Positions 25,723 through 56,600 of a stretch of DNA of 64,000 bases are shown in pieces. The DNA lies in contig CBFFRP010000400.1 in the NCBI GenBank assembly GCA_965644295.1, positions 124,001-188,000 of the forward strand, given 5' to 3'. The stretch is from Paraphysomonas bandaiensis. Taxonomy: Eukaryota; Protista; Chrysophyceae. The position numbers were made by a program, and so were the translations under genes. The first letter of the stretch is position 1. Every line of letters starts with the position of its first letter. The notes beneath the pieces were generated by a model, which was given only the letters and a program-made list of their open reading frames with translations, did not search any database and was not told where the DNA came from.

Positions 25723-26120
25723 TGTATGTATGTATGTATGTATGTATGTATGTATGTATGTATGTATGTATGTATGTATGTATGTATGTATGTATGTATG
25801 TATGTATGTATGTATGTATGTATGTATGTATGTATGTATGTATGTATGTATGTATGTATGTATGAGTGTATGTATGTATGTATGTATGTATGTATGTATG
25901 TATGTATGTATGTATGTATGTATGTATGTATGTATGTATGTATGTATGTATGTATGTATGTATGTATGTATGTATGTATGTATGTATGTATGTATGTATG
26001 TATGTATGTATGTATGTATGTATGTATGTATGTATGTATGTATGTATGTATGTATGTATGTATGTATGTATGTATGTATGTATGTATGTATGTATGTATG
26101 TATGTATGTATGTATGTATG
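25723..26120. repeat. (TATG)n microsatellite, ~400 bp
   Basis: Read directly; one interruption near 25865. Confidence 0.99.
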
Positions 26121-48741: not shown

Positions 48742-49827
48742 TTAGCATATATTTCGTTTTTTACCTATGAAATATACACCAGTGAAGTTTCTACCATTTA
48801 CACTAAATGACCTCACATCTTTACCTCGCTTCTCATAAAGAGAATCAAACCCAGATAAAAAAGAATCAACTACACTCTCCCGAACACGTATCGGGTGTAG
48901 CAATGCGTCTAAGTCAAGTACATCAGGAGGAGTGTAATTATCCCACCACCTCTCATGAAAAATCAGTGTTCCACCAGGCTTTAAAGCGTTGTACGTATTG
49001 CGCAGTACTTTCACTGCGTTCTCCACATGCTCCAGAACATTCACAATCATCAAAGCGTCAAATGATTCGAACATTAAATCCAAATGTTCGGCTCCAGCGT
49101 TAATAATTGTTGCCCCGCCAGGAGCAATGTTATTCACTCGGCCCGTTCTATAGGGACAGCTCTTGACATGTGCCGCGTAGCTAAGTGCATTAGGGTCCAG
49201 CAGCACATACCGTGATACACTATAATTACGTTCTTGAAGCATACCTAATGACTGCGTCCATGGACCAGCACCAACTTCAATAAAAGATCCTAAATTACTG
49301 CCATCTGGAGCCACTGCTTTATAGCCATTAAAATCTACCTTGTGCTCTTCTACTCTATCACCGACAGACGAATCGACATCGATGGATGCAATATCCCACA
49401 AAGCAGCCTCTGCTTCACGAGCAAGATTCCAGCGACTAGGAGACACAGCCCATACACCATCAGACGTATAAAAACATTTATCGTTTTTATTAACATGATC
49501 AGATTGTGTGAAATCATTTGTTTTTATTGTACAAGATGGACCACTCCATCCAGGTAAACAAAAACATTTTCCTAATAAGTTTTCACCATTACCATTGCAA
49601 TGATTACTTATGCATTTATGTCCTCTTGTATGTCCCTTTTCAATCCTTATATTCGAATCTTTCCATCCATATATTGATATATGATGAAGTATAAATTCAG
49701 GTGAACAGATTGAATGATGAGATGTATGATCATATCGTTTTATTATACATTTATTTATAAAATTAGCTGTTGTATATGTAGTGAATATAGATATGAATAG
49801 AGTGTGTATGAATTGAATATATCGCAT
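48742..49827 (-). CDS. Secretory class I SAM-dependent methyltransferase with an EGF-like module
   Basis: Hydrophobic N-terminus; CNGNG..CFCLPGWSGPSC; FIEVGAGP, NVLEHV and LKPGG motifs. Confidence 0.85.
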   Translation of the reverse strand: MRYIQFIHTLFISIFTTYTTANFINKCIIKRYDHTSHHSICSPEFILHHISIYGWKDSNIRIEKGHTRGHKCISNHCNGNGENLLGKCFCLPGWSGPSCTIKTNDFTQSDHVNKNDKCFYTSDGVWAVSPSRWNLAREAEAALWDIASIDVDSSVGDRVEEHKVDFNGYKAVAPDGSNLGSFIEVGAGPWTQSLGMLQERNYSVSRYVLLDPNALSYAAHVKSCPYRTGRVNNIAPGGATIINAGAEHLDLMFESFDALMIVNVLEHVENAVKVLRNTYNALKPGGTLIFHERWWDNYTPPDVLDLDALLHPIRVRESVVDSFLSGFDSLYEKRGKDVRSFSVNGRNFTGVYFIGKKRNIC

Positions 49828-49970
49828 TAGATATGAGATCCAGTGATTACTATGGGCGAATGTAACGGTGTTACTATGGTAGGATAGAGAGATAATAAGA
49901 GGGATGGTATGGATAGAAGGAATAAGAAGGATGGATGATAGTGCTGAGATATGATAGAGTGCATGTGCGT

Positions 49971-50108
49971 ATCGGCATCATTTGTATATTTGTTGAAGGA
50001 TGCCTCTAATATTGAGACAATAATTATGTACATTCCATCCGTAGTTGTATTGCAGTTCTATAGAATATATTTGCCTCAATATATTTCCGAAAAATAAGAT
50101 ACTGACTG
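49971..50108 (+). mobile_element. ~140-bp MITE-like repeat, copy 3
   Basis: Same core as copies 1, 2 and 4. Confidence 0.7.
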
Positions 50109-50119
50109 CCCATACGTGC

Positions 50120-50207
50120 TACATACATACATACATACATATACACAAATACATATACATACATACATACATACATACATACATACATACATACATACAT
50201 ACATACA

Positions 50208-50239
<32 letters not shown>

Positions 50240-50325
50240 CATACATACATACATACATACATACATACATACATACATACATACATACATACATACATAC
50301 ATACATACATACATACATACATACA

Positions 50326-50355
<30 letters not shown>
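50120..50355. repeat. (TACA)n microsatellite, left flank of the inserted element
   Basis: Read directly. Confidence 0.99.
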
Positions 50356-50356
<1 letters not shown>

Positions 50357-52832
50357 GTTACGACCCGTGAGAAAAATGTGCCAGTCGATGAACTGGCAGT
50401 GCCAGTTCATCGACTGGCAGTTTTTGACTATCACTCAAAAACCCACCAAGAAAGTGAGCCCGTCAGTGAAGTGGCTTATCCAGCCGTGTTTTTTTTCATT
50501 CCACCCACATACCATCGTAAGATATCGTAGTTGATGATTATCGCTCAATGCAACAGCCTGATAGTAATATAAGTGCTACATATATCATTGTATCAAACAA
50601 GAAGGAATGACATCGGTGGTTAAAACTGTCTCATCAGGGAGCACTGTACGACCAGAAGTTGCATCGTCAGTAGACGACAACACTAGATCTATCACTGATT
50701 CCATTAAAATTGAAGAACACAAACGACTGTTCTATCTGAATGCACAAAACGCTTTCGCAAATTCAATTAAAATTTTCTCTCAGTCGAAATACCTTGAGAT
50801 CGTCGAGTCGATGAAATCATTTGACTCCAAGCCTCATAGGAACCGCTCCTGTCTAGACTACCGATGGCTCCTGTTGCAGTATTGGTAAATGAGCACGGTG
50901 ATACTCCATCAAGAGGGGCGAAAAGTAAAGCAGTGAGTGCCGCACTAGCTGAACAATGCGAAAGGATGAAAAGATTTTCCACGTCTGGCACTCCAACCGA
51001 TGAGGCGGAAGTCCTACAGGTGGGTAGTGTTGTTTTAGTCAAACCACATCAGGTGGACCGAGGACAAGTTGATGAAATCAGGTTTCCAGTTGTTGTTGTT
51101 GAGGTTACCCCCAATGAATTACTTCGTCTGTACGCTCCCGGGGGAGTTTAAACTCGTGTTATAACCGATCAGATCTGATTCACGAGCCAAATAAGACCCC
51201 TGCTTCATACCAACGTCATCTTGGAAACTATGAGAACTGGAGAAATTCGAAGACTATATCAGAGAGAGAAGCTGCAACTATGTTTTCTCCATCCCTTGGA
51301 CAGGGGTTTAGTAATTGTAGTTGCAAGGGTAAGTGCAACAGTAATAAATGTGTGTGCAAGAAGAATGGATTTCTCTGTAACTAGGTGCCACAAAAGCAAT
51401 TTGCTTGCGTATTGTAACAAGTAGTTGGTGCCATAGTAAACTACAGACTACTACTTAACTGAGTAGAAAAACAACCTTAACAAGTAACATGAATCTTATT
51501 TGGTACTGGTTGCATGAATCTTATTAGCAACTAGTGATATATAAATCGCTATTTATTAACATCATCAGTACATCAGCTCTAAGTATTTTAGTAGCTATTT
51601 ACCTTAATATTGTGTCCACTGTCTGCAGATGATATATGTAATGAATAGAGTGTAGAAAGCCTATCACATAATAGCCATATTATTGAGTAGATCTTGATTC
51701 ATATAGAGTCGATATTCATAATAATTGTACATATTCAAACATGGAATATGTACAAGCGAAAGCATATACAATAGAGAGCTCATAGTATAAAATAACCCGA
51801 TAGCTGGTTACTACAAGTAACATGAATATTATTTGCTACTAGTGATATAAACTAACATCACTAGTACATCAGTTATAACTAATGTAATCAGTTGTTATCG
51901 TACAGCCTATAAGGAGTATCCGCTGTCATCATATATGTAATGAATATAGAGTATCATCTGTACAATAGTACTACATTAATTAAAAACATCAGTATATCAG
52001 TTATAAGTAATTTAGTCACTATTTACCTTGTTATCGTGTCCACTGTATGGGGAAGTGGACCAACTAATGTCCCCCAGGGACACAGCACTCTGCAGTTGAT
52101 GTAACGCACATACTGGAAGAATTCCTCACCACGGGTTAATGGCACCGTCGAAGATCCGATGCGAACTTACTCACAGACATTGGTCCAAAGCTAGGAGATA
52201 TTACAGACCCCAACCACCAATGGGACCTACATCAATACATCCTCAGGCGAGACAGCACGTACGCTACACAAACGCAGCGAGACCCGCAGTGGAACGAGGC
52301 TCCCACACAAACTCCATCCAATCCGCACCCATAACTCCCCTAACACTACATCTCTTTCCCAGACCGCATACGCGAAACGGTATACGTCTGGAACAAATCC
52401 TATGCAATGGGAAGAAATCGAGTCAAAAGCAAAACCGGGAATGACCAGACAACAGCTGCCGCATGCATAGACTGTAGAATCACCAATCAGAGAATATGAC
52501 AAACCAAGTTAGTAAGACTATACATAGCTTCTAGTCACAACCGTTCCCATGTAAAAATAAGATATTCTTATGTCTTATCCATGCTCTCATGAAGAAGGAA
52601 GTAGCACTGAAGAGGGATACAGATATCTATCTTGATACTGAAGGCTGGTAGGCTGGAATAGCATCTTGTGGGCTAATAATCAGGAGCTCTTATGATACTA
52701 GTTATGAGATGCTGTCTACGCTGGGAATCCGAGTGGACTTGCTGTATACTTGACTGTATTTCCCGTATATCGTTTCCTTTCAACATCATCAAACCAGTCG
52801 ATGAACTGGCAGCTGCCAGTTCATCGACTGCA
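50356..52832 (+). mobile_element. Non-autonomous integrase-type (KRBA2/SCAND3/GingerRoot-like) element with terminal palindromes, inserted in (TACA)n
   Basis: TG...CA ends, with the same palindrome at 50379-50419 and 52795-52830. Broken ORF 50607-51424 contains VGSVVLV..VDRGQVD and GQGF-CxC..C..C.C..C..RCH..C.NK-like C-terminal motifs. No DDE core seen. Confidence 0.7.
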
Positions 52833-53132
52833 TACATACATACATACATACATACATACATACATACATACATACATACATACATACATACATACATACA
52901 TACATACATACATACATACATACATACATACATACATACATACCTACCTACCTACCTACCTACCTACCTACCTACCTACCTACCTACCTACCTACATACA
53001 TACATACATACATACATACCTACCTACCTACCTACCTACCTACCTACCTACCTACCTACCTACCTACCTACCTACCTACCTACCTACCTACCTACCTACC
53101 TACCTACCTACCTACATACATACATACATACA

Positions 53133-53164
<32 letters not shown>

Positions 53165-53535
53165 CATACATACATACATACATACATACATACATACATA
53201 CATACATACATACATACATACATACATACATACATACATACATACATACATACATACATACATACATACATACATACATACATACATACATACATACATA
53301 CATACATACATACATACATACATACATACATACATACATACATACATACATACATACATACATACATACATACATACATACATACATACATACATACATA
53401 CATACATACATACATACATACATACATACATACATACATACATACATACATACATACATACATACATACATACATACATACATACATACATACATACATA
53501 CATACATACATACATACACACATACATACATATAC
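52833..53535. repeat. (TACA)n/(TACC)n compound microsatellite
   Basis: Read directly; TACC blocks at ~52941-53113. Confidence 0.99.
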
Positions 53536-53649
53536 ATGCATATACATGCATATGATCTCATGTTGGTCGTGTTTAGTTCTTAGTATCATCCCATAACTCT
53601 CAATATCATTTATATCCAGTGTAGTCTGATCTGTTGAGGGATTTGGATA

Positions 53650-56600
53650 ATGGGGAATGAGATTACGAAGAAGTATGAGTTACCTGCAGGTGATTATGTA
53701 TGTCTGTGTGTATGTCTGTGTGTGTATGTATGTGTATGGGTTGATATGGAAGGACTCTCATGGAGTATGTGTGTATGTGTTAGTGGTTATATATGCGTGT
53801 ATACATACGTGATTAGTGTATATATGTATGTATGTATATGTATGTATATGTATGTATATGTGTGACACATGTGTCTATATGATATAAGTAACTTATGTAC
53901 AGAGCACAATGCCACTGCTGGACTCTGTCAACTATGGAAGATATATCCTGGCTATAAGATGGCTAAAGATATGACCAAGAGAGAGGTCTCTGTGTGGATA
54001 ATGACTAAAGATGGACTCTCTAAACGTGATCCAATACCTGTAACTGAAAAGAGTCATGTAGAACAAGTCTTTCAGATTATGAAGAAAGATGTATTAACTA
54101 TGAAAGACATGTCTCATGGTGGTATTGTTAAAGTTATTGAGGTATCACTTGTTTAGTAGATATTTTCATGTTAATTTTTAGTTAGGTTGTTGAAGAAGGA
54201 CGAAAAGGTATAGCGTTTGTCACCGAACGGATTGTTTGCTCCCTAGCCGACCTCTTACAACGATTTGAGTCTATACCTGGGCGGTACAGCTGGCATAGCG
54301 TGTATTTGGACCCTAGCGCGACCATAACAGAAGTTGAAATTTCACGGGGTATTCTAAATATAGCCTCTGGACTACAGTACTTGCACAGTGTTAAGCGCCG
54401 ACTCCATCTCAATATTAGTCCCGAAAGTATTGTACTAACTCCAAATGGTCAGTGGAAGCTTTGTGGTCTGGGTTTCTCTCTCAGTATGACTGCTGACGAT
54501 GTGAGGGTTGCGCTACCATACTTTCTGAACCAGTCTAATGCACCCATTCGCCTCGAGCCGGATGTGCGTTACTGTGCACCTGAAGTGACAGAAGGCGGAC
54601 TCTCTCCTGGTGGTAATATTCGTTATGCTTCTATCCCCACTGACATTTTTGCTCTTGGTCTCTTGGGGTTTGAGGTATATCGTTACAACCTTCAAACCGC
54701 AATGCAGGGCAGAACCCATATACCTGTACTTGACGTGAATAATAACAGCATATCTGAGCATTGCTCAAAAGTATTGGATGCCATCGCGAAATTAGACTAC
54801 TCTTCTGTGCCTCTTGCTCTGAGACAAGTGGTAACAGGAATGCTGCAGGCCTCCGCGGCCGCACGTGTATCGGCACTGGATATCATTAACAACCCGTTTT
54901 TCCATTCTGGGGATCTCGCTGTACTGAAGGCTATGGATGAGCTGCCTTCCAAAGATGTGGGTTCCCAAGCATCTAATTTGGCATCCTTACCGTCACAAAT
55001 TAGCCATTTCTCACCCCGCCTAATAGAGAATTCCATACTTCCTGTTGTTTGCTTGATAGGAACGGCAAACCCAGCTATGTGGTCTTACACTCTGCCTGTA
55101 CTGGCTTTCATTTCGTCCAAGATACCCTCGCAGTCATTTCTACGCGTAGCAACACCTGCAATTACCAAGGGACTCGCTGTGTCTGACTTTACAGAAACGA
55201 TATATGCCTTCGTGAAGCATGTAGACCTTTTGCTGGACAATTTTGACATGCAATATTTTCAACAGAATGTCGTCCCAATGCTGTGTAATGGGGTGGATCG
55301 ACAGAGTTCTCCATCTTTACAGGTGTCTGCCATCAAAGTTCTGGTTGACGACAGGGTGCAGAAACATATTGATCAAGATACTTTTCTGACTGAAATAGTG
55401 CCTCGAGTTTGCAAGGAGGCGTGCAAGAATGCAGACGTCGACGTCAAGGTACGACCGGCTGTAATATACTAGTTTTGTTCCCAGATGTCCAAGTGCATGT
55501 TGTTACCATTAACAGTTGCCTATGTTTTGTTCCCAGATGTCGTTCTTTTTCCTAATTGTGTTCTCTGCAGCTGAGGGCTCTCTATTTGTTGTCAGTTACT
55601 GCCTCTCGATTCGACAGAAACTTCGTCACAAAAAATATATTCCCATCTCTGAAACATATCCTTGAGAAAGCACCTCCACCCCAGGTTTCGATGGCGTGCG
55701 TGGGTGTCTACAGTGCAATGCAGCCGCTTGTAAACTCTGACTCCCTGTGCACTGCTGTTCTTCCAGTTCTCGTGCCTATCTTGGCGGACCGGACACTTAA
55801 CAGAGAGCAGTTTGAACTACTCACGAACCGCATACTGTTCTTTCAGCAGCTTGTATTGACTGACCGTACCAATGAATATAGTATTCCTGAAATACGAGTC
55901 TGGAATAATCAGAAGCCTAAAGGGTACTTCTTCAAGGAAGATGCAGACAAGGCAAAGGGTATAAACAGTGGAATGATAACTCCTCAGGCTCCCCCTCCAC
56001 CCCCACCTGCACCACACAGTTCTTCCAACAGCACAGCCCCCCCCCCTGTACCGTCCAAACCCCCACCTGCTGTCCCATCATCAGCACCTCCTAGCGTGCC
56101 TAATAAGCCACCTAGCGTACCAAGTAAACCACCTAGTGTGCCTAGCAGCGCCCCGTCAAGTTCTCCTCCTCCAGTACCACAGAAACCCCCCAGTATACCT
56201 GCTACGGCCGCCCCTAGCGTTCCCCCGAAGCTTCCTGCTGCTCCTCCTGTTCCAGAAGCTGCTACTTCCGGTTCATCCCTAGCATCATTCTTTTCTTCGT
56301 CGTCTTCGGCCGCCACCACACAGTCTACTGCAGCCTACACTCCTCCCTCAGTACCCTCGCCTGCCCCTGCTACTGCTAATGACCCCAACGACATTGATAT
56401 CGATGACTTCATGTCTTCTTTCAAAAAATCATCCAATACATCTACTAGCGCAACCACGACGTCTGGATCTAGTAATCCACCCCCATTCACCCCTACGATC
56501 CCACCTCCAAAGAGAGCTTCTTACTCGGATAAACCTCAGCAGCAGCCTGTGCAACAGTCAGGTGGATGGGGAGCGGGGGGTATGGATATGTTTGGTGATA

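Follow-up and report, generated by a model that had tools for sequence, protein, structure and literature searches.

A probable Ginger2/TDD transposon remnant and its family in the (TACA)n microsatellites of Paraphysomonas bandaiensis

The stretch of DNA analyzed here (hereafter the window: 64,000 nucleotides, positions 124,001 to 188,000 of contig CBFFRP010000400.1 of the chrysophyte Paraphysomonas bandaiensis) contains a 2,475-bp nonrepeat unit (50356–52830) which splits a (TACA)n tract, leaving flanking tracts of 236 and 702 bp. We read this unit, with a probability of about 0.88, as a dead, nonautonomous copy of a cut-and-paste DNA transposon of the Ginger2/TDD group, whose bias toward such arrays most likely stems from its target motif. 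The family to which it belongs, named here after the coding copy on C370, is a new member of the known Ginger2 superfamily in a protist and reveals no new mechanism of transposition; its modestly novel trait is a near-exclusive residence in (TACA)n arrays. A preliminary description made from the window had correctly located the 2.48-kb unit and two palindromes within it (50379–50419 and 52795–52830), and considered the element an undescribed, microsatellite-targeting type of transposon with hairpin palindromes instead of terminal inverted repeats (TIRs), possibly one that expands its flanking repeats.

Copies, termini and target-site duplications

The genome searched comprises 62.6 Mb in 669 contigs and holds 13 further element loci at 90–100% identity, which gives 14 loci with the window copy. 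Complete copies, found on C92, C285, C357, C358, and C370, reach 26 bp past the right palindrome, to a 22-bp tip that matches the left tip (TGTTACG...) exactly when reverse-complemented; with up to three mismatches allowed, a genome search gives 28 occurrences of the tip, in both orientations. The TIR of the family is ~62–66 bp long and consists at both ends of complete copies of the 22-bp tip followed by a palindrome of 41–44 bp, the termini read 5′-TGTTA...TAACA-3′, and the full element measures ~4.5 kb. These values lie within the published range for Ginger2, with TIRs of ~45–300 bp and 5′-TGTNR termini. In the window copy only the left TIR is intact, and its extreme ends are not inverted repeats of each other because the final 26 bp of the family's right end (...CGTAACA) have been lost, not because the family is without TIRs. 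The preliminary description had itself named ordinary TIRs in other copies as evidence contrary to its hairpin ends, and such TIRs are what those copies carry; of the genome search for the palindrome which it had proposed, the expected (TACA)n flanks were recovered at 13 of the 14 loci, and microsatellite targeting is retained as an association.

Comparison of paired flanks revealed equal 4-bp sequences in six of seven complete copies: TATG on both sides of the C92 copy (the right flank being unique DNA) and of the second copy on C370, CATA on both sides of the C285 and C358 copies, TATA on both sides of the C357 copy, and TATC on both sides of a copy of a related family on C456. The first copy on C370, flanked by TATG and CATA, is the only unequal one. 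The C357 copy lies inside a CATA array, so that the length of its duplication is unambiguous. As read from these flanks, the target-site duplication (TSD) of the family is 4 bp, and the three informative copies (C92, C357, and C456, with TATG, TATA, and TATC) exclude the 6-bp, GingerRoot-like duplication suggested earlier. Distinct derivatives with internal deletions are present at different loci and with different flanks, and were thus mobilized in trans; they are 95.6–99.8% alike, so that this mobilization was recent.

We used the first copy on C370 (4,491 bp, C370:44598–49088) as the reference for the window copy in a block alignment, in which the latter (50356–52830, plus strand) retains element positions 1–511 and lacks positions 512–1468, corresponding to residues 88–407 of the transposase with its zinc finger and whole DDE core. 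The N-terminal remnant (residues 1–87; 50607–50867, plus strand) is 95% identical to the C370 protein by tblastn and also appears in the list of open reading frames (ORFs); the junction of the 957-bp deletion lies at 50868–50872 (plus strand), and the C-terminal remnant (residues 408–591, with a barrel-like region and a Cys-rich tail; 50873–51421, plus strand) follows, now carrying frameshifts, its ORF at 50864–51151 being continued by coding sequence in the following frames. This bears out the view that the remnant ORF represents the two termini, N and C, of an integrase of the KRBA2/SCAND3 type whose core has been deleted. A further 1.3-kb segment of the reference and its last 26 bp are missing, and a 348-bp stretch of the window copy is absent from the reference. 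As judged from its sequence, the window copy is unable to encode a transposase and, without one of its tips, also not movable by one.

At the left end of the window copy, the complete TIR (50356–50421, plus strand), delimited by the tip matches in the genome and by the other copies, consists of the tip and a 41-bp palindrome (50379–50419) in which two GCCAGT-N6-ACTGGC units stand in inverted orientation, its 20-nt arms being separated by 1 nt and extendable to 26 nt at 92%. The right palindrome (52795–52830) is a perfect one of 36 bp (18 + 18 nt), abuts the microsatellite exactly, and is the sole remainder of the right TIR. Within each 20-nt arm the sequence again forms a small inverted repeat, and for this reason the two ends of the window element look both direct and inverted with respect to each other. 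The 17-mer core of the palindrome is present at four places in the window, where 100 shuffles give an expectation of zero, and folding of the element ends as single-stranded DNA gives –26.6 and –19 kcal/mol (z of about –9 relative to shuffles). The flanking arrays, delimited with TRF and by sequence, are a (TACA)n tract of 59.5 units on the left (50120–50355), whose last letters before the element tip are ...CATA, and, on the right (52831–53532), 176 units of (CATA)n with two (TACC)n blocks inside; arrays and palindromes are given without strand.

Breaks or deletions inside the palindrome were found in the copies on C352, C358, C289, and C371 and at the left end of the second C370 copy, and the right end of the window copy is broken exactly at the outer edge of its palindrome. 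Such breaks fit the known instability of long palindromes and illustrate how these decay. Over 2,457 bp, the window copy and the copy on C371 (C371:189740–195573) are 100% identical; the latter stops at the center of the right palindrome, and about 2 kb past this break lies an inverted partial copy whose complete right TIR adjoins (TATG)n, an arrangement resembling a rearrangement hinged on the palindrome. We considered whether C371 represents an empty allele of the window locus, or its other haplotype, and rejected this, given that the element and the microsatellite are shared but the unique flanks are not, and that the palindrome center is rearranged.

Several other arrangements were seen among the copies. 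The two C370 copies stand in tandem with 38 bp of (TATG)n between them, and the second is interrupted in its N-terminal coding part by a nested, gypsy-like long terminal repeat (LTR) retroelement (C370, ~49617–55080), whose ORFs are 438 aa (reverse transcriptase motifs) and 463 aa (integrase) long. On C352 (~172965–180241), a full-length non-LTR retrotransposon, whose ORF of 2,316 aa is uninterrupted, is nested in a Ginger2 copy at element position 2164/2167; this 7.3-kb insert was considered as an autonomous element of the family and discarded on account of its non-LTR identity. The related copy on C456 (C456:2596–9437, TSD TATC) carries inside its TIR an insert of ~3.85 kb (C456:5571–9416) with ORFs of 214 and 547 aa and TTTTTCT on both sides, which is tyrosine-recombinase-like by eye and possibly a Crypton. 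Within the window copy itself, a segment of ~370 bp (52104–52475, no strand assigned) matches, at ~80% identity, over 20 copies of a different, ~1.35-kb repeat, and may be captured DNA or a shared module.

Transposase and superfamily assignment

The family element carries one intronless transposase gene. C370 has two adjacent long copies, the first of which encodes an uninterrupted ORF of 591 aa; its product matches the Pfam integrase core (rve) with an E value of 1.5e-8 and, in the PDB, the foamy-virus (PFV) integrase with an E value of 8e-14, in an alignment that includes the SDxG and PQSQG-VE motifs and spans the second D and the E of the catalytic triad. The protein has 694 database homologs, the named ones being invertebrate "KRAB-A domain-containing protein 2-like" proteins, with E values of 1e-80 to 1e-90 and 35–40% identity over 80–95% of the length. 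D203, D262, and E299 are invariant in a 15-sequence alignment (A1), as are a C-terminal barrel-like block and the Cys-rich tail. A regular-expression search found neither a GPY/F nor a YPYY motif in the 591-aa protein. For the zinc finger, H144 and the Cys pair (C170/C173/C175) align with the relatives; relatives also carry the Pfam domain Znf_SCAND3. Position 138 is Arg in the first C370 copy, and the first zinc-finger His in all 14 aligned relatives and in the second C370 copy. Pfam Integrase_H2C2 did not score on the C370 protein, though it did on relatives. The second copy differs from the first by 1 nt in 1,506 and is the one split by the gypsy-like element. Of the autonomous HHCC-DDE copy which the preliminary description had called for, the first C370 copy has the uninterrupted ORF and the DDE core, with Arg138 in place of the first zinc-finger His.

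Besides the two C370 copies, no other core of this Ginger2 family was found in the genome. Further matches of the core search, at 29–37% identity, lie in long open frames (many of 1,500–1,600 aa) presumed to be pol genes of LTR retroelements, and the remaining ones are short remnants of diverged Ginger2 families.

Ginger2/TDD elements, which occur in protists, fungi, and animals (Bao, Kapitonov & Jurka 2010; PMC2836005), are defined by TGTNR termini, a 4-bp TSD, an RTATAY target, and an H2C2 zinc finger with a DDE core in the absence of GPY/F and YPYY motifs, with TIRs of 45–300 bp and a 5-bp TSD in TDD-4/5 (PMC2836005). Apart from the zinc finger, with Arg138 in the only uninterrupted ORF and no Integrase_H2C2 score, and the target, these features, namely the Ginger2 homology with its DDE core, the absence of GPY/F and YPYY, the termini and TIRs, and the 4-bp TSD, are found in the C370 family. 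Its target at the tips is YATR, AT-rich and one base from RTATAY, with CATA/TATG at ~20 of 28 tips and TATA at 4 of 28. On the basis of the KRBA2-like homology and this published definition, the C370 family can be assigned to Ginger2; the cores of KRBA2 and SCAND3 derive from Ginger2 transposases (PMC3575427). The element is accordingly of a published type (PMC2836005, PMC3575427) and not an undescribed one. Relatives are also encoded on 14 metagenome contigs; their ~5 distinct TIR families start with TGTTACG, and the flanks are TATA in most cases.

Residence in (TACA)n arrays

Of the 14 family loci, 13 are located within (TACA)n or at its edge, and ~20 of the 28 tips abut at least three array units; whichever way the element is oriented, the junction always falls in the CATA register. 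Counted over perfect (CATA)6+ runs, in-register matches number 143,270 and make up ~0.9% of the genome; at 1% genome coverage, 13 of 14 loci in arrays corresponds to P ~ 1e-25. Preference for the 4-mer alone predicts ~16% array insertions, a window-based estimate under which the observed 13 of 14 has P = 5e-10. The hexamer ACATAC occurs 247,746 times in the genome, at least 143,270 of these (at least 58%) in perfect (CATA)6+ runs, and 93% of the ACATACAT octamers within the window are in arrays. Because the motif is found mostly inside arrays, most of the array bias is explained by a target motif of 6–8 bp, and no special repeat-sensing device is needed; most likely the bias stems from a motif longer than the TSD and close to A-CATA-C. 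No array was present within 1.5 kb at the sampled loci of other repeats (three copies of a miniature inverted-repeat transposable element [MITE], two copies of the 1.35-kb repeat, and one nested non-LTR element) or at three diverged Ginger2 remnants. Literature searches found no described DNA transposon that targets (TACA)n. The family offers a clean natural example of DNA transposons of the cut-and-paste type that are nearly confined, in a fixed register, to one tetranucleotide microsatellite, together with a simple quantitative reason for this confinement, a 6–8-bp motif whose occurrences in this genome are chiefly within arrays. DNA transposons with a restricted target are rare, and they hold interest as models of safe-harbor integration.

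The subterminal palindromes recur beyond the C370 family. Related families in the same genome keep the palindrome architecture with compensatory changes in N6 (CGATGA/TCATCG, TGCTCG/CGAGCA, and CGCTCG/CGAGCG), and unrelated Ginger2 TIRs from the metagenomes contain palindromes of 14–22 bp at 28–103 nt from the tip (14–18 bp at 28–98 nt in four families, and 22 bp at 82–103 nt in the fifth), such palindromes being present in only 2.3% of shuffled 110-mers. One example among these relatives is a 16–18-bp palindrome, 45–62 nt from the tip, with a compensatory variant. The palindromes are putative transposase-binding sites for a symmetric multimer, and their recurrence in Ginger2 TIRs provides a testable lead to end recognition by integrase-like transposases.

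The most serious alternative to a motif-driven bias, which we nevertheless consider improbable, is that the association with arrays is regional: untranscribed gaps between divergent genes would act as open chromatin easily entered by any transposon, or as harmless sites at which selection spares insertions, and the transposase would do no more than pick YATR locally. Array and transposon do sit in the gap between head-to-head genes in the window, a minus-strand neighbor (361-aa ORF, 48742–49827, whose 5′ part ends at 49827) and a plus-strand neighbor starting near 53650, whose protein begins MGNEITKKYE; a MITE-like repeat of 150 bp adjoins the same array, and the hexamer model slightly underpredicts the 13 of 14 loci. 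Against this, the sampled other repeats (MITE, 1.35-kb repeat, non-LTR element, and diverged Ginger2 remnants) are not array-bound, the youngest copies (pairs 99–100% identical) are already in arrays, which leaves little time for selective sorting, and every junction uses the same CATA register. The MITE-like repeat (49967–50117, with short inverted ends) adjoins the left (TACA)n array and has at least 50 copies in the genome at 85–90% identity (825 first-look candidates), of which three others inspected are not beside arrays. It is very unlikely that the adjoining microsatellite owes its origin or its length to the element itself, for instance by way of footprints or of slippage starting from the TSD and terminus. 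The long tracts of 236 and 702 bp beside the window copy would suit such an origin, but ~143,000 in-register (CATA)6 matches stand against ~14 element copies, the window has arrays of comparable length without an element (25723–26120), and the repeat unit is not carried on in the tip sequence; we found no evidence for the expansion of flanking repeats that had been suggested.

Two readings of the termini can be given still less weight. A new kind of transposon that uses hairpin palindromes instead of TIRs and moves through hairpin or single-strand intermediates (IS200/IS605-like or Helitron-like) would agree with the unmatched extreme ends of the window copy, with the stable palindrome at each of them, and with the compensatory nature of the N6 changes between families. 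It is nonetheless highly improbable, as other copies run 26 bp past the right palindrome to an exact reverse complement of the left tip, 4-bp TSDs flank the tips of these copies, and the enzyme is a DDE integrase-like transposase and not an HUH or Y1 one. Least probable, to the point of being negligible, is that the transposon belongs to the GingerRoot type and duplicates 6 bp, for which nothing speaks except the TSD length of that type and a phase argument leaning on the truncated right end. GingerRoot elements have TA...TA termini, 6-bp TSDs, TIRs of 100–150 bp, and GC-rich targets (PMC6839031); the TG...CA termini, 4-bp TSD, ~62–66-bp TIRs, and AT-rich targets found here contradict every one of these defining features.

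It should be noted that several observations weigh against the reading as a Ginger2 copy with a motif-driven array bias. One complete copy, the first on C370, has unequal flanks (TATG vs. CATA). A search with the unique left flank of the window locus, which matched only the locus itself and the MITE-like repeat of ~150 bp, revealed no empty site or second haplotype in the assembly; insertion and TSD are for this reason deduced from paired flanks only. No fully canonical transposase gene was found, the sole uninterrupted ORF having Arg138 and the sister copy with His138 being interrupted. A pure hexamer model, with 58–70% of sites in arrays, underpredicts the 13 of 14 loci (P 0.005–0.05), so that the motif would have to be longer or a regional effect involved. 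Finally, the binding role of the palindromes is one that we infer.

Under the reading as a Ginger2 family with motif-driven targeting, the transposase would bind the palindromic units of each TIR as a dimer or tetramer, cut at the TG/CA tips, and integrate with a 4-bp stagger at a motif near A-CATA-C, a shift of one base from the published Ginger2 preference R-TATA-Y. The (TACA)n arrays would supply one such site every 4 bp, the motif being found mainly there in this genome, and the fixed CATA register at every junction would fit a choice of cut site at the level of sequence. More tentatively, and with the odds rather against it, the lineage may have shifted from the generic TATA to the CATA register of (TACA)n, and the palindromes may be an undescribed transposase-binding module of the superfamily. 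If so, recognition would extend beyond the 4-bp duplication, the microsatellites of promoter gaps would be a safe harbor in a compact protist genome, the family would parallel, on the cellular side, the Ginger2-like crab nimavirus integrase that targets (TA)n, and the compensatory changes in N6 would be a sign that a symmetric or cruciform site is under selection.

Comparison with known systems

Compared with the Ginger2 elements of the founding description (PMC2836005), for which the published TSD is TATA and the target RTATAY, the TSD here is mostly CATA/TATG, 13 of 14 loci lie in one type of microsatellite, and each TIR contains a palindrome of ~40 bp, whereas the founding paper is without mention of such palindromes. 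The termini resemble those of insect Ginger2 (Bombyx mori and Rhodnius prolixus; PMC3845634), whose TIRs start TGTTACGG and whose TSD is TATA: The first seven bases are shared, the insect elements and their MITEs likewise have a 4-bp TSD centered on TATA, and nonautonomous derivatives outnumber coding copies in both. The host here is instead a protist, and no microsatellite association has been reported for the insect elements.

KRBA2 and SCAND3/ZBED9, domesticated from Ginger2 (PMC3575427), are similar to the C370 protein over the full length of their integrase-like part, but they are single-copy host genes without TIRs, whereas the present family is mobile, with TIRs, TSDs, and deletion derivatives. 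With GingerRoot (PMC6839031) the family shares an integrase-related DDE transposase and cut-and-paste transposition. Microsatellite-specific integration by a DDE enzyme of the Ginger2 clade, with defined TIRs (46 bp), is also known from the integrase of the endogenous nimaviruses of sesarmid crabs (PMC10871703); the cargo there is a viral genome of 265–285 kb and the target an (AT/TA)n dinucleotide repeat, whereas the family described here is an ordinary cellular transposon of 2.5–4.5 kb in a tetranucleotide repeat.

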